Below, one piece after another: positions 25,268 to 39,642 of a stretch of DNA of 64,000 bases. The notes under the pieces are model-generated. The model worked only from the letters and a program-made list of their open reading frames with translations. It made no database searches and was not told the origin of the DNA. The stretch lies in the sequence record NC_042056.1, one strand, 5' to 3'. Within the stretch, counting starts at the first letter, position 1. Each line of letters begins with the position of its first letter. Made by a program: the position numbers and the translations under genes.

Positions 25268-25891
25268 ATGAATCTATTACAGATGCGCGTTCGCACGGCA
25301 CTGATATCTGCGGCGGGGGTTCTGAACGCCATACCGAAGCTGCCTAAAATAGTGCTCGGTGATGAAATCAGAAAGCGGCTTATTGTCAGTATGCTTGAAG
25401 AACAGACGTGGGCGAAGTACAGAACACTTCCTGCGGGTTATTCACAAGTAAGGCCACCGTATGTGGGTCAAACGCTAGACATGCTTAAAACGTTGTTTAA
25501 GGGCGCTACCGTTGACGATGTACAACATGCGTATCGGTGTCTGGCGAATGCGACAGACAAACTACTCGCTCGGAGCTATGGCTTATGGCCAGAAGGTTTA
25601 CCCGAAGAGGGTTTCGATGGCAGTTACCCTGCGGGTGCGCTGTTGTTTGACCACGGGGTGTCTTACCGATTCCACAAGAACTTCATCCATGCAGTTTGGC
25701 TACGTCCAACGGTAGACATGAAGGAAATGTCAGTTGCTTCCTACATCGACTTCATTTGCACACATTGCGGCGACGTCGACGTCAAGGGCTACACGGTGCG
25801 TGAACTAACACCATCGATGCCTATCGAAGATTTCCTCGGCGATGTGCACACCGATTATTTGGAGAGGAAATTATGCTCTACATCGAAGTGA
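25268..25891 (+). CDS. hypothetical protein
   Basis: Track ORF 25244..25891; ATG 25268 follows GGGGA. Confidence 0.65.
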   Translation: MNLLQMRVRTALISAAGVLNAIPKLPKIVLGDEIRKRLIVSMLEEQTWAKYRTLPAGYSQVRPPYVGQTLDMLKTLFKGATVDDVQHAYRCLANATDKLLARSYGLWPEGLPEEGFDGSYPAGALLFDHGVSYRFHKNFIHAVWLRPTVDMKEMSVASYIDFICTHCGDVDVKGYTVRELTPSMPIEDFLGDVHTDYLERKLCSTSK

Positions 25892-26349
25892 GTCCTGATA
25901 AGGTCTCCGGTGACCTGTTCCCCGGATTGCGTAAATGGATTGATGACCAGAACGAACACCGAGGTCAACCCATCCGTGTGGTTATGGCAGTGGAAGATGA
26001 TATTCCGATGGGTGTTATGGCCTATGCCGATGGCCAGATACTCTACATCTACGTACCGGAAGAATCTCGCCGGGGTGGTGTCGGTACGGCATTACTGAAA
26101 CGTGCGGTGCTGGAAAGTAAGCGTTCGGTGGTCAGTGTAAAGGTGCACCCGTCGAACGTTGATGGATTATGTTTCATGCTCAAGTGCGGCTTCGCTATTG
26201 ATGGTGTCATGATCGGTTTGGATAATGTACGTTATCATCGTATGACGAATAACATCGTCGTTGTACATACGCCGCCGGAGGAGAAGCACTTAGAAACGTT
26301 TGTGACGAATGTGCCGATATTTTTATCGATGGCGGAAGGTAATTTCTAG
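25873..26349 (+). CDS. GNAT-family N-acetyltransferase
   Basis: Motif A YVPEESRRGGVGTALL and motif B N...LCFMLKCGF. Confidence 0.8.
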   Translation: MLYIEVSPDKVSGDLFPGLRKWIDDQNEHRGQPIRVVMAVEDDIPMGVMAYADGQILYIYVPEESRRGGVGTALLKRAVLESKRSVVSVKVHPSNVDGLCFMLKCGFAIDGVMIGLDNVRYHRMTNNIVVVHTPPEEKHLETFVTNVPIFLSMAEGNF

Positions 26350-29765: not shown

Positions 29766-30242
29766 ATGAAAGTCGTTTTAGTTTCTAAGTTAACATCCCG
29801 GCTGGGCCAGAAGTTCCACGCCGAGTTAACCGATTTGCACAACAGTCTCTATAACGACCAGCAGGCCCGTCTTAAAGACCTGAATGGCCGAAGTGGCTTT
29901 AATGAAATCGATGATGTCTCCGAAGTCTGGAGCGAAGGACAGCAGGCTGCCGTGGCTGTAGACGACGAAGGTCGTGCGGTGGGGTTCCTGTCCTTCTCCA
30001 TTCAGACCGGTCGGTCGAACATGGGCAGTAAGTGGTTGTGGATTTACAACTTCTATGTCAACAACGACCAACGTGGTAAAGGTGTCGGTCTTCTGCTGAT
30101 GAACGCGGTGCGTGACCACGGGAAAGCCAAAGGTTGTGGTTTCATGCAGCTCTACGTGCTGGACAATAACCAGCAAGCGATTGCGATGTACCAGAAGTTT
30201 GGTTTTCGCACCGAATATCGGGATATGGTGAAGGAGATTTAA
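29766..30242 (+). CDS. GNAT-family N-acetyltransferase
   Basis: FYVNNDQRGKGVGLLLM (motif A) and VLDNNQQAIAMYQKFGF (motif B); intact canonical GNAT. Confidence 0.88.
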   Translation: MKVVLVSKLTSRLGQKFHAELTDLHNSLYNDQQARLKDLNGRSGFNEIDDVSEVWSEGQQAAVAVDDEGRAVGFLSFSIQTGRSNMGSKWLWIYNFYVNNDQRGKGVGLLLMNAVRDHGKAKGCGFMQLYVLDNNQQAIAMYQKFGFRTEYRDMVKEI

Positions 30243-34266: not shown

Positions 34267-34302
34267 CCCTCTTACCTTCGGGTAAGAGGGTTTTATTTTT
34301 TT
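34267..34302 (+). terminator. intrinsic terminator (cUUCGg)
   Basis: CCCTCTTACC-TTCG-GGTAAGAGGG plus T tract. Confidence 0.88.
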
Positions 34303-34342
34303 TACACCAACCAATAGTCCTATGCTTTATTCCACAAAATCT

Positions 34343-35236: not shown

Positions 35237-35246
35237 AAGTAAAGTA

Positions 35247-35276
35247 AAGGGGGTCTTTCCCCCTTCTTATTTTTTG
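35247..35276 (+). terminator. intrinsic terminator
   Basis: AAGGGGG-tcttt-CCCCCTT plus T tract. Confidence 0.65.
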
Positions 35277-35334
35277 CCTTTTTACGCAACTTCCCTTTCC
35301 TGTGAATAACAAGAATTTGTTGCGGGGGAAATCG

Positions 35335-36342
35335 ATGCAATCGATAGCGCAATCAACCATCATTAAACCGTCGGTCGAACCGACAGAACAGCAAATCAAT
35401 ATCACCATTGAGCGTCTCACTTGGGGTAGCGAAAAAGCACGCGAGTATTATCATGCCTTTGGGTCACGTACCATTCCGATTAAACAGTTGAACGTTATCC
35501 TCAAAAATCCGCAGTACCAAGTCTTCGGTTTGCGTAACGACAGACATAAGCCACTTGGGTATATCTCGGTCATTACTACCATGGGCGATGAAACACTCAT
35601 CATTCACCATGCAGAAGAGATTATCTCTAAGTCTCTTAACAAAGTGGCGATGATGATGTTGTTGGATCACGTCGGGTGCCGCTATGCAATGACGGTTGAC
35701 GGGTCGTCTGATAACTTCGACTTCCGCAATCGCATGGGCTTTAAGCTGATTGAAAACAACTGGATGGTGAACTGTAAACCGTACGAGAAACTTCCCATCG
35801 ATAAACGGATTGTGGATGTCTCTGGTTTAGAGTCACTCAGCGAACATCAGCTTGAGCAACTTACCGGTTTAGTCCGCTACACCATCTACCGCGAAGGGCA
35901 GACTGATCCGTTTGGTCGGGAAATCTTCCGTGAAGTGTTACCAGAGTCGGTCATTGAACGTGGGCGCACCAGTCAGTATAAAACGCTGGTCTGGATGGAT
36001 GCGGGGGATATTCTCGGCGTCGCACAACTGCAATACGCACAATGGGGTGAGGTTATCCTGAGTGGGGTTGGGGTTGATGGTTCCCATACGGGCAAGCGTA
36101 TCGGGCGCAATCTGGTTGCCGCGGCAATTCAGAAAGCGGGCATGTCTCACGAACACCTGATGGCCACCACCTTTGCAGACAATGGGCCAATGAACCACCT
36201 GTTTGGAAACCTCTTAGGTTGGGATATGTTGCCGGGGTCAATTGGCGTGGAGTTGGTTGAGAACGCGGTGAGCTGGAAGAAGTCGAAGAAGTATCTGGGT
36301 GTGACAGCCGGTCACGGTGCCCCAATGTACAAAGGGGATTGA
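35335..36342 (+). CDS. tandem (two-domain) GNAT-fold acetyltransferase
   Basis: C-domain has VGVDGSHTGKRIGRNLV and N.PMNHLF..LLGW; the N-domain ends FRNRMGFK like GNAT motif B. Confidence 0.7.
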   Translation: MQSIAQSTIIKPSVEPTEQQINITIERLTWGSEKAREYYHAFGSRTIPIKQLNVILKNPQYQVFGLRNDRHKPLGYISVITTMGDETLIIHHAEEIISKSLNKVAMMMLLDHVGCRYAMTVDGSSDNFDFRNRMGFKLIENNWMVNCKPYEKLPIDKRIVDVSGLESLSEHQLEQLTGLVRYTIYREGQTDPFGREIFREVLPESVIERGRTSQYKTLVWMDAGDILGVAQLQYAQWGEVILSGVGVDGSHTGKRIGRNLVAAAIQKAGMSHEHLMATTFADNGPMNHLFGNLLGWDMLPGSIGVELVENAVSWKKSKKYLGVTAGHGAPMYKGD

Positions 36343-36343
36343 G

Positions 36344-37165
36344 ATGCGTTCTATTTTAAAATGGGTCGGTGGAAAGAAGCGAATCATCCAACCCCTGCGT
36401 AAGGTGTTCGGTGACACCGATTGTTTCGTCGAGCCGTTCGTGGGCGCAGGTTCGGTATTCATGAACACCAACTTCCCGAAGTACATTCTCTCTGACTACA
36501 ATCCCGATTTGGTTGCGGTGCTCCGTTCTGCGATGGAAGCCCCGGACGATTTGGTGGAAGCTTGTGAGCAACTCTGGACTAACGGGTGTGACCCTGAGGT
36601 TTATGATGCCCGCCGGGCGATACTCAACGACCGTGAGAACGTCACCGTCGAAGACACCATTGACCGGGCAGCTATCTTCATTTACCTGAACCGTCACGGG
36701 TACAATGGGTTGTGTCGCTACAACAAGTCGGGCGGGTACAACGTCCCTTATGGCGACCACCCAACCAAACCGTATTTACCCAAAGAAGAAATTCATGCTT
36801 TCTGGAAACGCTGCACCGAATCCGAAGTAGACTTGCGCTGCTGTGGCTTTGAGGAGACGATTATCAATGCACCGAAAGGTTCACTGATTTACGCTGACCC
36901 TCCGTACATACCCAGCTCGAAGACTTCCTCGTTTGCGCAGTATCATAAAGCGTCCTTTAACCAACAACACCAACGCCAATTGGCTAAACTCCTGAAAGAA
37001 GCACATCTTCGTGGTTGTCGTGTAGTCCTGTCGAATTCTGATACGCTGCTCACCAAAGACATCTACTATGGCTTCCAATGGGAGACCGTAGAGGTGGGGC
37101 GGTATTTAGGGTCGAAGGCTGAAACCCGTGGACGTGTGAACGAGTTGATTGGTGTTCTGGAGTAA
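36344..37165 (+). CDS. dam: DNA adenine methyltransferase (Dam/D12 class)
   Basis: LKWVGGK, FVEPFVGAGSVF, FIYLNRHGYNGLCRYN..G.YNVPYG, catalytic YADPPY and VVLSNSD. Confidence 0.93.
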   Translation: MRSILKWVGGKKRIIQPLRKVFGDTDCFVEPFVGAGSVFMNTNFPKYILSDYNPDLVAVLRSAMEAPDDLVEACEQLWTNGCDPEVYDARRAILNDRENVTVEDTIDRAAIFIYLNRHGYNGLCRYNKSGGYNVPYGDHPTKPYLPKEEIHAFWKRCTESEVDLRCCGFEETIINAPKGSLIYADPPYIPSSKTSSFAQYHKASFNQQHQRQLAKLLKEAHLRGCRVVLSNSDTLLTKDIYYGFQWETVEVGRYLGSKAETRGRVNELIGVLE

Positions 37166-37167
37166 CC

Positions 37168-37962
37168 ATGCACCTGTTATCGTATCCACCTGTGTACGAG
37201 CGACCTGTCCTCCTTAACGGTCGAGAGGTTGAAGTTGAACGTATCTGGCAAGGCATTAAACAAACCCATCCGTTAGCGATGGACGAGGAGCATTATCTGG
37301 TGGTGTCTAACACTCGCCAGACGCTCCTTGTATTAAGTGGCGAACGTCACGGCGATGTGTTCCATATTCTCAATATGGTGCCGATGACCGACAAGCCCTT
37401 TTACCAGTGGAAAAACCTCATGCGTCAACTCGAAGTGGTTCACTTCGATGTGGTATTAGACCCAAGTGCTCACGTCGAGCACGGGATATGCCAGGCCATG
37501 GGACTTGAGTTCGTGACAAAGCGTGTGAAGTTTACCCCGTTTGATGTTTCGCGTTTCAACACGCGTGCGCCGATGATTCATCGTCAGGAGAACTGCTCTC
37601 TTGATGAGATGGAGCGTGTGTGTCAGATAACGAAGAAATCACTGCCGGGGTACAAGCACATCTTAAAGGAAGTGGCGTTCGGTTTTATGGAAACGTTGGT
37701 ACGCAAACAAAACGACAAGATTACGTCGGTGTTGTTTGTTAGCCAGACACCTAATACCGTCACCGTCGCTAACTACGTTTCTGTGTTTCATCAACAGGAC
37801 AGGCAGTATGCGCAGGACTTCTCGGAGTTCTTCCGATACTTACTGAAACTGTGCGGGACACAGAAAAAGTCGTTGTATATCTCGCTGGACGCTAAGGCAG
37901 AGATACCGACTTACGATGGTATCACTCATGAGGTGGTGACACATCATTACACGATTGCTTAG
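37168..37962 (+). CDS. putative degenerate tandem GNAT-fold protein
   Basis: 264 aa, two ~120-aa halves; the first ends ICQAMGLEF (motif-B-like). No intact acetyl-CoA motif A. Confidence 0.45.
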   Translation: MHLLSYPPVYERPVLLNGREVEVERIWQGIKQTHPLAMDEEHYLVVSNTRQTLLVLSGERHGDVFHILNMVPMTDKPFYQWKNLMRQLEVVHFDVVLDPSAHVEHGICQAMGLEFVTKRVKFTPFDVSRFNTRAPMIHRQENCSLDEMERVCQITKKSLPGYKHILKEVAFGFMETLVRKQNDKITSVLFVSQTPNTVTVANYVSVFHQQDRQYAQDFSEFFRYLLKLCGTQKKSLYISLDAKAEIPTYDGITHEVVTHHYTIA

Positions 37963-37969
37963 GAGGGTT

Positions 37970-38731
37970 ATGAGAGAGATAACGAAAGAGGTGCTAGATG
38001 GTACGTATGACCAACCGCTCGGGCGTGGTGTATTAGACTGGCGTATCTTAGATCTGGCCCCCATGGAAACAAAACACATTGTTGAAGTGGGGCGTTGGCG
38101 TGTGTACCTAAAACGTCATCGTATCGAGGAAACAGCGCTACTGATTTCCGTTGACCGTTTTGGGGATGTGGAAGAACCACTGAATCTGCTCCCTGATGTG
38201 CTGGACGTCAAGGCAGTCTTTGCTTACTCGACGACGACTGCGGATGAAGCCCTTAAACGAATAGGGTTTGATCTGCATGCAGTGAAATATATCATTCCAC
38301 CGCGCGAGGGTATCAGACCACCGCCGAAGATGATTGAAAACTGCCTGTTGACGGACCAAGAAGCGGCGTCTTTTAAACTGGCCGCCATCGAAGAAGAAAG
38401 CATCCGTAAAGCGGCGGAAGCGTACGGTATGGGCACAGCTGCGTTTCACCGTGTCGACTTTGGGCACGGACGTACGGCAGTTGCGCTTATCAATATCGTC
38501 GATGAACATGCCACACTGCTGACGCACTGGGCAAGTGACTTCCAATCGCAAATGACGGTTGCTGACATCTTTAACTACATTGCCTCCTGTCAGAAGAACG
38601 GCGGGGAGTACGTGGTTAACCGTCAAACGTTCGATGACCCAACCCCTCTGGTGGAAACGCTGGAAACCCTCCACACCACGACACGCGGTGTTTATATTAT
38701 CACAAAAGGAGTATCTACCCATGCAAACTAG
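37970..38731 (+). CDS. putative degenerate tandem GNAT-fold protein
   Basis: ATG follows SD AGGAGG; the first half ends ALKRIGFDL (motif-B-like). Same size and layout as its neighbour. Confidence 0.45.
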   Translation: MREITKEVLDGTYDQPLGRGVLDWRILDLAPMETKHIVEVGRWRVYLKRHRIEETALLISVDRFGDVEEPLNLLPDVLDVKAVFAYSTTTADEALKRIGFDLHAVKYIIPPREGIRPPPKMIENCLLTDQEAASFKLAAIEEESIRKAAEAYGMGTAAFHRVDFGHGRTAVALINIVDEHATLLTHWASDFQSQMTVADIFNYIASCQKNGGEYVVNRQTFDDPTPLVETLETLHTTTRGVYIITKGVSTHAN

Positions 38732-39017
38732 CATCAATCGTTCTGTCGCGCGTTCTAAAGAAGTGGTTTACGATGTGGTCTCTGGTGAAAAGACCCTGTT
38801 CCGTGCGGTGATTGTCGAGAACAACGAACTGCTCGTGGTCTATCCGGGTGGCGAGTTCTCTAAAGCGGAAAAGGTGGCACTGGATAAACTCATCACCAAA
38901 GCGAAACACCGCGACGGGATTTCTATCCACCGTGTGGTTAATGGTCGTGAGTTAGTGGAGAATGGCAAAGACTTAGAAGTGCGTCCCGTGAGCACGCAAG
39001 TCAACGCCTTTGTATGA
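38721..39017 (+). CDS. hypothetical protein
   Basis: ATG 38721 follows AAGGAGTAT (track start 38559 is too long). Confidence 0.7.
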   Translation: MQTSINRSVARSKEVVYDVVSGEKTLFRAVIVENNELLVVYPGGEFSKAEKVALDKLITKAKHRDGISIHRVVNGRELVENGKDLEVRPVSTQVNAFV

Positions 39018-39044: not shown

Positions 39045-39545
39045 ATGGATGTTATCGATTTCGAACAGCTTCCACAGCACGACTTCGACCTCGGCGTCCG
39101 TGACATGGATTGCGGCTTCGAAGAAAAGGCGCGTGCGCTGTTCCAGAAATACGGCGAACTGATTATGGGTACCGACCATCCAGACATCACACTGGATGAG
39201 TTCGAGAAACTGATCGTTGGTCTCATCACGACCCGTGCACAGGACAGAGCGTTGCTGAACGAGTTGAACTTTACCACCGTGTCCCCCGCGGATGCTGCCG
39301 GTATCCTGTCGCAGTCCATCGTGCCGAACGATGAGATTCTCGACAAGGTTGCTGAGCTACGTGGCCCGTTCGACACAGCGGTAGAAGACTACGCGCAGCA
39401 GTTAGCGGAATCGGAATACGCGATGGTCGCCCCTGAGGGTGAGCAGCTGCCGTCTGATGAGCAAACTGAAACTGCCCGTCTGCGTCTTGCGCGATATGTC
39501 ATTACCAGCGTGCTGGTTGATGACCGTGAAGATTGTCAGCTCTAA
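39045..39545 (+). CDS. hypothetical protein (acidic)
   Basis: 166 aa ORF, SD GAGGA. Confidence 0.75.
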   Translation: MDVIDFEQLPQHDFDLGVRDMDCGFEEKARALFQKYGELIMGTDHPDITLDEFEKLIVGLITTRAQDRALLNELNFTTVSPADAAGILSQSIVPNDEILDKVAELRGPFDTAVEDYAQQLAESEYAMVAPEGEQLPSDEQTETARLRLARYVITSVLVDDREDCQL

Positions 39546-39552
39546 TGAAATG

Positions 39553-39582
39553 ACCTCACCTTCGGGTGGGGTTTATTTTTTT
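39553..39582 (+). terminator. intrinsic terminator (cUUCGg)
   Basis: ACCTCACC-TTCG-GGTGGGGT plus T tract. Confidence 0.8.
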
Positions 39583-39642
39583 GCCTTTTTACAGAATAGC
39601 ACCTATCTATGTCAAACCAAATAACCCTGAGGATTAAAAGCA

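Follow-up and report, generated by a model that had tools for sequence, protein, structure and literature searches.

A GATC-type methylase gene and diverged tandem-GNAT paralogues share a six-gene unit in Erwinia phage Machina

The Dam-type methyltransferase gene gp117 of Erwinia phage Machina (NC_042056.1), an SPN3US-like jumbo phage, belongs to a six-gene unit, gp116-gp121, that lies between two terminators and two exact copies of a T-rich 15-mer. The unit is most likely an early-type operon that joins a GATC methylase with host-directed paralogues of the GNAT family. The analysis covered a stretch of 64,000 nucleotides of the record, here called the window, and record coordinates are obtained by adding 62000 to those in Table 1.

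Table 1. Features of the gp116-gp121 unit and its borders, in window coordinates
Feature	Position	Strand	Basis or remark
Terminator-like hairpin and T-run, closing the upstream unit gp114-gp115	35247..35265	+	7 pairs, 5 GC, T-rich tail
Promoter-like T-rich 15-mer, immediately 3' of the terminator	35271..35285	+	One of two exact copies in the window
gp116, 335 aa, two-domain GNAT-type protein, family G	35335..36342	+	Pfam, profile alignment
gp117, 273 aa, orphan EcoDam-type N6-adenine DNA methyltransferase, predicted GATC-specific	36344..37165	+	Pfam, TIGR00571, alignment
gp118, 264 aa, family X, tandem-GNAT fold lacking the conserved glycine of the cofactor loop	37168..37962	+	AlphaFold2 model
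gp119, 253 aa, remote gp118 paralogue, family Ya, fold inferred by homology	37970..38731	+	hhalign
gp120, 98 aa, small conserved protein, family S	38721..39017	+	phrog_7896
gp121, 166 aa, family Z, conserved and strongly acidic, final gene of the unit	39045..39545	+	Composition, conservation
Terminator-like hairpin and T-run, ending the six-gene unit	39552..39573	+	9 pairs, 5 GC
15-mer, second exact copy, where the next unit (from gp122) starts	39578..39592	+	Exact string match

The coordinates of gp116-gp119 agree with the RefSeq annotation of NC_042056.1, and the spacers are 1 nt between gp116 and gp117, 2 nt between gp117 and gp118, and 7 nt between gp118 and gp119. An earlier sequence-only reading had described four genes behind one terminator at these distances, and both the coordinates and the upstream hairpin bear this out. 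It had also treated these genes as a four-gene cassette. While the four are adjacent, the unit runs on past 38731 through gp120, the start of which overlaps gp119 by 11 nt, and gp121, which begins 27 nt after gp120, to the second hairpin. Each start codon of gp116-gp119 is preceded by an SD-like purine run. Of the 57 same-strand junctions in the window, 29 (51%) are equally tight, at 10 nt or less, and runs of five and seven tight junctions are present elsewhere in the window. The tight spacing of the Dam and GNAT genes is no more than chance gives in the window.

The 15-mer occurs as an exact copy in the window only at 35271 and 39578; with up to two mismatches allowed, 0.43 matches would be expected. 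With one C/T difference, it is located upstream of the gp116 orthologue in ChrisDB, SPN3US, pEa29, SPAsTU and L016, and in the Erskineviruses a near-identical string sits upstream of Dam. Five genera keep the string at the orthologous position and, going by what PMC7598289 describes in general terms, it may serve as an early promoter. No transcriptome or infected-cell proteome for any SPN3US-like phage was found in the literature.

The gp117 protein classifies as a D12-class Dam (PF02086, E = 1e-51, 176.6 bits with a cut-off of 22) and scores 235.9 bits against the TIGR00571 'dam' model (cut-off 114.85). It aligns over its full length with the structures of E. coli Dam (2g1p, 4gol; E = 1e-57), and the alignment includes the catalytic DPPY motif and an FxGxG-type N-terminal SAM-binding glycine loop. 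The six positions that contact GATC in the EcoDam-DNA structure (K9, Y119, N120, L122, R124 and P134) are all identical in gp117. The best PADLOC match is 'orphan methyltransferase', and no cognate nuclease was seen near the gene. The protein is predicted to methylate GATC to m6A in the phage DNA. GATC is the most avoided palindromic tetramer of the genome, with an observed-to-expected ratio of 0.28, which points to long-standing selection at this site.

The Pfam GNAT match of gp116 is confined to residues 195-295 (PF00583, 35.2 bits with a cut-off of 20.7). The profile of the gp116 family matches GNATs in the PDB at 1e-5 and VipF (6wqb) at 3.5e-4, and its best PDB matches are functionally heterogeneous. 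The glycine of the acetyl-CoA pyrophosphate loop, G257, is present in all nine members of family G, and R258 is invariant in a seven-member alignment of the family. The gp116 family is collinear with the gp118 family over 201 columns (hhalign, E = 2.5e-4), and the gp118 model matches the BFVD model of the gp116 orthologue in Kwan (E = 3.7e-14, TM 0.58). Judged by these sequence features, gp116 is a probable two-domain GNAT with a canonical C-terminal and a degenerate N-terminal domain, and it alone among gp116, gp118 and gp119 looks catalytically intact. Two more single-domain GNAT genes are located nearby, suggesting that GNAT genes are simply frequent in this arm of the genome.

The AlphaFold2 model of gp118 (pLDDT 91.9, pTM 0.82) confidently predicts two consecutive GNAT-type alpha/beta domains, that is, a tandem GNAT. 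In a Foldseek search of the PDB, the model matches tandem GNATs over 250-340 columns with E-values of 1e-12 to 1e-7 and a probability of 1.0; VipF (6wqb) has an E-value of 2.8e-12, and 2wpw, 7q3a, 3tt2 and 2c27 were also found. In the C-terminal domain of the model, the last two strands follow one another with no intervening helix. None of ten members of family X has a Pfam or PDB sequence match, and no GNAT Pfam model matches even at E<=1. The loop between strand 4 and helix 3 contains no invariant glycine among 13 sequences, and the strict R/Q-x-x-G-x-G/A motif at the pyrophosphate loop is present in none of the 13 members.

The AlphaFold2 model of gp119 was unusable (pLDDT 37, with only five sequences in the alignment). 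However, the Ya family aligns with the X family over 211 columns (hhalign probability 85%, E = 6e-6), and with the Yb family at a probability of 78-88%. No GNAT Pfam match was found in any of 11 members of family Ya, even at E<=1, and eight members contain no conserved glycine at the aligned cofactor loop. A 256-aa protein of phiEaH2, taken as the Yb product by length and organism alone, matches the gp118 model (E = 1.1e-8). Profile homology by itself points to gp119 as a gp118 paralogue with a tandem-GNAT-like fold, and families G, X, Ya and Yb would be diverged paralogues of one two-domain GNAT family. The earlier description of the flanking genes as tandem-GNAT-type is upheld for gp118 by structure, for gp119 by profile homology, and for gp116 by Pfam and the collinear profiles. 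The same reading suggested that degenerate GNATs could be scaffolds or specificity subunits: gp118 and gp119 indeed lack the loop glycine that gp116 keeps, and a scaffold role for them is plausible. Nor is loss of the canonical loop proof that catalysis is lost, because Fem and MprF-type GNAT folds, which are among the structural matches of the gp118 model, use aminoacyl-tRNA.

A tblastn search with gp116, gp118 and gp119 against 50,697 phage records gave no match outside the SPN3US-like jumbo phages. Every one of the 53 cassette-bearing phage records retains family X, and the gp118-type family is confined to one phage clade, with eight cluster representatives among 1.84 billion proteins. All genomes and metagenomic contigs examined show the adjacency Dam-X-Y-S-Z without exception; family S follows the Y gene in all genera examined, and the genomes carry Ya, Yb or both. 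The Erskineviruses retain Dam-X-Y-S-Z and lack family G. The arm from thymidylate kinase to past gp121 is syntenic among the relatives. Co-occurrence of the four genes had been proposed as a check, and the families are always found with Dam and in the same synteny. However, all occurrences belong to one syntenic clade, so that co-occurrence is inseparable from vertical inheritance and does not constitute independent evidence.

The dN/dS ratios of the six genes range from 0.03 to 0.17 (0.05-0.06 for gp116, 0.08 for gp118, 0.07-0.10 for gp119 and 0.13-0.17 for gp120), indicating purifying selection. Families G, X and Y are 23-41% identical to their orthologues, compared with 43-64% for Dam and Z, which corresponds to an approximately twofold faster divergence. 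The gp121 protein has a pI of 4.1 and a net charge of -23, which ranges from -21 to -24 in five genera, and its identity across genera is 43-63%. No Pfam, PDB or PADLOC match was found for it.

We propose that gp116-gp121 is a co-transcribed, probably early-type operon conserved in the SPN3US-like jumbo phages, an explanation that, taken as a whole, we consider evenly poised. The gp117 protein would be an ordinary EcoDam-type methylase that places m6A on the GATC sites of the phage DNA, which the host Dam would presumably not reach because replication is thought to take place inside the chimallin shell. The gp116, gp118, gp119 and SPN3US gp107-type proteins would be diverged paralogues of a single two-domain GNAT family. 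Most likely, gp116 would acetylate a host or phage protein or a small molecule, and gp118 and gp119 would be non-catalytic binding or scaffold proteins, or users of a non-canonical donor. The Dam and GNAT genes would be linked by common expression timing and inherited gene order, not by common adenine chemistry. The proposal builds on observed genes, folds (for gp119 by profile homology), motif states, unit boundaries, distribution and purifying selection; the promoter class, the GNAT targets and the non-catalytic role of gp118 and gp119 are what we infer. The GNATs of jumbo phages have been predicted to modify host proteins, and nucleus-forming phages were noted to have few DNA-modification systems (Iyer et al. 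2021; PMC7824862). In the same phage group, the C-terminal domain of chimallin is a precedent for a catalytically dead GNAT fold with a structural function (PMC9365700). The lineage-specific loss of G and the variable content of Ya and Yb form a pattern to be expected if the genes serve host interaction, and not if they encode an enzyme partner that Dam cannot do without.

The sequence-only reading had raised the possibility of a Dam-linked adenine hypermodification system. In such a system a GNAT would acylate adenine at N6 in the manner of Mom, while Dam and the degenerate GNATs would serve as partners or specificity subunits. GNAT-fold genes do flank Dam within one operon, and the adjacency is conserved across all relatives. 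Yet gp116, gp118 and gp119 show no tblastn similarity to any Mom-bearing phage among the 50,697 records, and the PHROG matches are three function-unknown families. Structural comparison with Mom, made for the gp118 model, placed a Mom protein as match 44 in BFVD (E = 4.8e-3, TM 0.24-0.29), outranked by generic GNATs, N-myristoyltransferases and Fem proteins. Moreover, the Erskineviruses keep Dam-X-Y-S-Z without the sole GNAT that has an intact cofactor loop. In phage Mu, the tie between mom and Dam is regulatory, in that the host Dam methylates GATC sites in the mom control region. Unlike that region, the stretch 35237-35334, which takes in the terminator and everything from there to gp116, contains no GATC, and the nearest one, at 35665, is inside gp116. 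Other jumbo phages do have Mom-family GNATs, but these systems are typically nuclease-fused and were placed in other jumbo-phage groups (Iyer et al. 2021; PMC7824862). We regard a Dam-coupled acyl-modification system as unsupported and highly improbable here. Only slightly less improbable is a single Dam-centred DNA-marking or anti-restriction machine of SPN3US-like nucleus-forming phages, made up of Dam-X-Y-S-Z with gp116 as an accessory. Drawing on a non-canonical donor, its degenerate GNATs would dock on Dam or DNA and either add to GATC adenines or read them; alternatively, they would retarget Dam in the phage nucleus. The acidic gp121 would serve as a shield for the complex or as a DNA mimic. 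The invariant adjacency of Dam-X-Y-S-Z is also what such a functional complex would give.

That the GNAT paralogues act on or with Dam, with gp116 acetylating it or gp118 and gp119 binding it and altering its activity, specificity or nuclear entry, seems quite unlikely. All five genera and the metagenomic contigs share the Dam-X-Y order with spacers no longer than 10 nt, and the juxtaposed start and stop codons with their own SD-like sites are compatible with stoichiometric co-expression. However, such spacing is commonplace in the genome, the order says little about partnership because the whole arm is syntenic from thymidylate kinase past gp121, and the rate of divergence of X and Y is about double that of Dam, whereas obligate partners of a conserved enzyme would not usually outpace it in this way. 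The rapid divergence of G, X and Y, along with their differential loss, would fit a module directed against restriction or other defences, in which Dam masks GATC, gp121 mimics DNA, and the GNATs acetylate or sequester host defence proteins, much as the anti-CRISPR AcrVA5 is an acetyltransferase. The acidity of gp121, conserved in five genera, the avoidance of GATC and the early-promoter-like motif upstream are consistent with such a module. Nonetheless, we consider it unlikely: gp118-gp121 have no PADLOC, Pfam, PHROG-function or PDB match by sequence, gp121 shows no sequence relation to Ocr or ArdA, and such functions are believed to be less necessary for a phage that forms a nucleus (PMC7824862; PMC13282480). 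The loss of the cofactor-loop signature and the lack of family-model matches could also mean that gp118 and gp119 are decaying duplicates without function. This is exceedingly improbable in view of their low dN/dS (0.07-0.10 against two relatives), the intact reading frames with SD-like sites, the retention of family X in every cassette-bearing record and the very confident gp118 model.

For annotation, three phage protein families listed as function-unknown, phrog_9941 (gp118), phrog_15621 and the SPN3US gp107 type, can be described as diverged tandem-GNAT-fold paralogues of the neighbouring annotated acetyltransferase, based on a confident model for phrog_9941 and on profile homology for the other two, and the boundaries of the operon are now defined. 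If Dam-X-Y-S-Z did form one complex, a conserved Dam with dedicated partners, in a genome that strongly avoids GATC, would raise the question of what purpose GATC methylation has in these phages, given that nucleus-forming phages are believed to have little need of DNA modification. Of the oddities seen here, the one most open to testing is that a phage with its own GATC methylase avoids GATC.

Compared with known systems, gp117 keeps the DPPY motif, the SAM loop and the GATC-contact positions of E. coli Dam. However, its gene belongs to a phage whose genome avoids GATC, and its 238 bits against the E. coli equivalog model NF008152 fall short of the 441-bit cut-off. Mu Mom shares with the Machina proteins the GNAT superfamily, a phage gene and a conceptual link to Dam, but Mom is a single-domain protein to which gp118 is only a remote, generic fold match, and the Dam link in Mu is host methylation upstream of mom rather than an adjacent dam gene. 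The acidic composition of gp121 fits the DNA mimics Ocr and ArdA, while it has no sequence relation to either, and acidity alone is weak evidence. The tandem GNATs VipF (6wqb, 7wx5), ORF14 of the clavulanate pathway (2wpw), MAB_4324 (7q3a), MshD (2c27) and Eis resemble the Machina proteins in having two GNAT-like domains per chain of 250-340 aa. However, their identity to gp118 is 8-13% with TM scores of 0.42-0.50, neither domain of gp118 or gp119 has a conserved cofactor-loop glycine, the C-terminal domain of gp118 is without the helix between the last two strands, and the family is limited to one phage clade. MshD has a degenerate N-terminal and an intact C-terminal domain, and gp116 is similar to it in this respect. 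Rac of the phiKMV-like phages is likewise a GNAT of lytic phages, and a host-directed role has been predicted for jumbo-phage GNATs generally (PMC7824862; PMC13282480); Rac is a single-domain enzyme, however, and is likened to gp116 by kind and not by specific similarity. The C-terminal domain of chimallin has a GNAT fold without the acetyltransferase active-site residues and is put to non-catalytic use (PMC9365700). It does not appear among the 50 best PDB matches to the gp118 model and differs in architecture and size; it is a precedent rather than a relative.

The genes gp116 to gp119 of Erwinia phage Machina (NC_042056.1, 241,654 bp; record coordinates equal window coordinates plus 62000) belong to a single six-gene unit that extends to gp121. 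The annotated coordinates give spacers of 1, 2 and 7 nt between gp116, gp117, gp118 and gp119, in agreement with the sequence-only reading, and the terminator that it placed ahead of these genes corresponds to a hairpin with a T-run. The adjacency of the four genes is thus confirmed, but the unit does not end with gp119, as had been proposed, since it also includes gp120 and gp121. A purine-rich, Shine-Dalgarno-like run is located 5' of every start from gp116 to gp119. Such short spacers do not set the unit apart, because 29 of the 57 same-strand junctions in the annotated portion of the window are at most 10 nt long, and runs of five and seven tight junctions are present elsewhere in the window. 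Machina is one of the SPN3US-like jumbo phages. The segment at 35200-38800 matches its record at 100% identity and is 83-99.8% identical to eight other Machina-like phage records, among them Huxley, Parshik, pSal-SNUABM-04 and several pEa_SNUABM phages.

Coordinates of the six-gene unit and related features (window coordinates unless a locus is named: L002, SPN3US; L003, ChrisDB; L005, phiEaH2; L006, Asesino; L016, metagenomic contig)
Feature	Coordinates	Remark
gp100	25873-26349	single-domain GNAT; acetyltransferase phrog_7861, 1.7e-73
Machina gp107	29766-30242	single-domain GNAT; PF00583, 1.4e-19
Module 5' of gp114	34267-34306	
Terminator-like hairpin and T-run	35247-35265	5' of gp116
Module 5' of gp116	35247-35286	
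15-mer, first copy	35271-35285	
gp116	35335-36342	annotated gene; GNAT
N-terminal extension of gp116	35335-35400	
gp117	36344-37165	annotated gene; Dam
gp118	37168-37962	annotated gene
gp119	37970-38731	annotated gene
gp120	38721-39017	11-nt overlap with gp119
gp121	39045-39545	27 nt after gp120
Next strong terminator, same strand	39552-39573	3' of gp121
Module 5' of gp122	39552-39593	
15-mer, second copy	39578-39592	
SPN3US gp107 (Yb)	L002 6493-7305	
ChrisDB gp123, gp124 (Ya and Yb)	L003 6405-7963	
Ya and Yb, metagenomic contig	L016 6810-8350	
gp116-less stretch, phiEaH2	L005 3864-4065	
gp116-less stretch, Asesino	L006 4055-4345	

The gp117 protein is a D12-class methylase (PF02086 at 1e-51) that exceeds the TIGR00571 cut-off and has "orphan methyltransferase" as its top PADLOC model. 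Among solved structures, the GATC enzymes E. coli Dam (1e-57) and M1.DpnII (9e-41) are the closest, whereas T4 Dam gives a much poorer match (1e-9). When gp117 is aligned with E. coli Dam, the DPPY motif and the glycine loop are unchanged, and the GATC-contact positions K9, Y119, N120, L122, R124 and P134 are all identical. Given these relatives and the retained motifs and contact positions, gp117 is very likely specific for GATC. Despite this phage-encoded methylase of the E. coli Dam type, GATC is strongly avoided in the window, with 90 sites observed versus 317 expected from trinucleotide frequencies. The resulting O/E of 0.28 is the lowest among the 16 palindromic tetramers, followed by CTAG at 0.48.

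The Pfam GNAT domain of gp116 is confined to the C-terminal half of the protein (residues 195-295), and the profile of its family (G) matches many solved GNATs, including the tandem-GNAT effector VipF. The Machina-type gp116 proteins have about 21 extra N-terminal residues that are missing from the orthologues in other genera, and the PHROG profile begins at residue 23.

No GNAT model in Pfam matched gp118 or nine of its orthologues (family X), even at E<=1, and a search of PDB sequences with gp118 gave no meaningful match. Among 1.84 billion cluster representatives, searched exhaustively, only eight relatives were identified, all of them orthologues from the phage clade to which Machina belongs. 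The AlphaFold2 model of gp118 built from these relatives has a pLDDT of 91.9 and a pTM of 0.82, and its top Foldseek matches in PDB are tandem GNATs, namely VipF (2.8e-12), a tandem GNAT of the clavulanate pathway and MAB_4324, with MshD, Eis, FemX and MprF lower in the ranking. In BFVD, the gp118 orthologues come first; further matches are the gp116 orthologue of phage Kwan (3.7e-14, TM 0.58), N-myristoyltransferases of giant viruses, a FemAB protein and a phiEaH2 protein of 256 aa, the same size as the product of the second gene after Dam. Shorter uncharacterised proteins of 213-215 aa, such as A0A1B2IE03 (Kwan, 215 aa) and A0A1B2IDM8 (Huxley, 214 aa), also match the model in BFVD (E 1e-7 to 3e-6). 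Machina gp97-gp128 include no homologue of SPN3US gp103 or ChrisDB gp119, two proteins of similar size that are encoded just 5' of the GNAT gene.

Searches with gp118 and gp119 returned only 2, 3 and 4 homologues, and the exhaustive gp118 search eight; both families are clade-restricted. The AlphaFold2 model of gp119, built on five sequences, reached a pLDDT of only 37. An all-against-all BLAST separated the second gene after Dam into two families prior to comparison with hhalign. Ya, the Machina gp119 type, is also found in the Wellingtonviruses, ChrisDB and two contigs, while Yb, the SPN3US gp107 type, occurs in Seoulvirus, Erskinevirus, ChrisDB and a single contig. Both are encoded by ChrisDB and one metagenomic contig; Machina and the Wellingtonviruses have Ya without Yb, and the Seoulviruses and Erskineviruses have Yb without Ya. 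Pairwise BLASTP searches among gp116, gp118 and gp119 gave either no match or an E-value of 0.001 at best. The hhalign family comparisons matched Ya to X (85%, E 6e-6, 211 columns), Ya to Yb (78-88%, E 1.8e-5 to 3.9e-7, 175-240 columns) and X to G (43%, E 2.5e-4, 201 collinear columns), from which we conclude that a single two-domain GNAT family has diverged into the paralogues G, X, Ya and Yb. The proposal that the genes flanking Dam have a GNAT fold is thereby upheld, by Pfam for gp116, by a confident model for gp118 and, for gp119, by homology to the gp118 family, on which its predicted membership rests.

The cofactor loop differs between the paralogues. In the C-terminal domain of G, the loop that connects strand 4 to helix 3 contains a glycine in nine of nine sequences, as part of a conserved H-x(5)-G-R-x-L motif. 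The aligned loops of X (n=13) and Ya (n=8) have neither an invariant glycine nor a motif of the R/Q-x-x-G-x-G/A type, and the N-terminal domains of all families likewise lack the loop motif. The C-terminal domain in the gp118 model is also missing the helix between the last two strands. The description of these GNATs as catalytically degenerate is therefore fair with regard to acetyl-CoA chemistry, and since GNAT folds of the Fem/MprF type are among the structural matches, gp118 and gp119 may use a non-canonical donor. The dN/dS values of all six genes, estimated against two Machina-like phages, are 0.03-0.17, so the genes are not decaying.

The gp121 protein (family Z) has a net charge of -23 over 166 aa and a pI of 4.1, and this acidity (-21 to -24) is maintained across five genera together with 43-63% identity. 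Its composition is DNA-mimic-like, and like gp118-gp120 it has no match in Pfam, NCBIfam, PADLOC or PDB sequence searches; the PHROG matches of gp118-gp121 are to families of unknown function only. Two further GNAT genes, gp100 and Machina gp107, the latter directly 3' of an internal head protein gene, are located 5-10 kb upstream of the cassette, which brings the number of GNAT-fold genes to five in about 13 kb.

The 64-kb window contains just two exact copies of one 15-mer, in both cases directly 3' of a terminator that bounds the unit. A nearly identical string (one C/T difference) is located at the orthologous site 5' of the gp116 orthologue in ChrisDB, SPN3US, pEa_SNUABM_29, SPAsTU and a metagenomic contig, and likewise 5' of Dam in the two Erskineviruses that lack gp116. 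The degenerate 15-nt and 14-nt patterns used to search for the string were derived from these sites. Since a conserved AT-rich motif has been described 5' of early operons in jumbo phages that encode RNA polymerases (PMC7598289), the 15-mer may represent an early-type promoter element. A hairpin with a CTTCGG-type loop, followed by a T-run and a string ending in TTTTTAC, recurs 5' of gp114, gp116 and gp122. The looser pattern gave six matches versus 0.75 expected, and the module is probably a sign of a terminator-promoter junction in early-type units. A sigma-70 promoter scan yielded fewer sites than in shuffled sequences, which is irrelevant here because the phage has its own RNA polymerases.

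Relatives of gp118, gp116 and gp119 were identified by tblastn in 53, 48 and 17 phage records, respectively, and every one is an SPN3US-like jumbo phage with Erwinia, Salmonella, Escherichia or Proteus as host. The order (G)-Dam-X-Y(-Y)-S-Z, where S is the gp120 family, was the same in every genome and contig examined, and each genome retains Ya, Yb or both. However, G is absent from the entire genomes of the Erskineviruses phiEaH2, Asesino and Stratton. In phiEaH2 and Asesino, the terminator and promoter-like string are followed by 170-290 nt of non-coding sequence before Dam. The identity of the orthologues to those in Machina is 49-64% for Dam, 43-63% for Z and 32-47% for S, and lower for G (25-41%), X (23-36%) and Y. 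The wider arm is syntenic too, with genes for thymidylate kinase and an HTH protein on its 5' side and small genes on its 3' side. The co-occurrence of Dam and GNATs, suggested earlier as a check, therefore holds as a constant gene order but does not provide evidence independent of common descent, as it comes from one syntenic clade. The invariant Dam-X-Y-S-Z core is nevertheless the chief caveat to the reading favoured below, since a physical complex would also yield it; the probability of such a complex is low but not zero.

The sequence-only reading had further suggested a Dam-coupled acyl modification of adenine, similar to that by Mom of phage Mu. This is not supported, since tblastn of phage records and the structure matches of the gp118 model revealed no specific relation to Mom, there are no GATC sites upstream of the cassette, one genus dispenses with the only GNAT that has an intact loop, and the Mu precedent is a regulatory tie to host Dam. 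The alternative that the cassette is an anti-restriction system has a small but non-zero probability. The literature searched contained neither a transcriptome or methylome nor a functional study that covers SPN3US gp104-gp109 or their orthologues. We favour a probably early operon in which the GATC methylase would act on phage DNA and the rapidly evolving GNAT paralogues would be directed at host or phage proteins, one of them as an enzyme and the others probably not.

In phage Mu, mom is linked to Dam through regulation and not through gene neighbourhood, whereas in Machina the dam gene itself is located beside the GNAT genes. A general prediction for jumbo-phage GNATs is in line with a protein-directed role (PMC7824862). 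SPN3US has been reported to possess a diverged chimallin and a shell-like lattice (PMC9365700), and chimallin, with its dead GNAT fold, represents a precedent for non-enzymatic GNAT paralogues.
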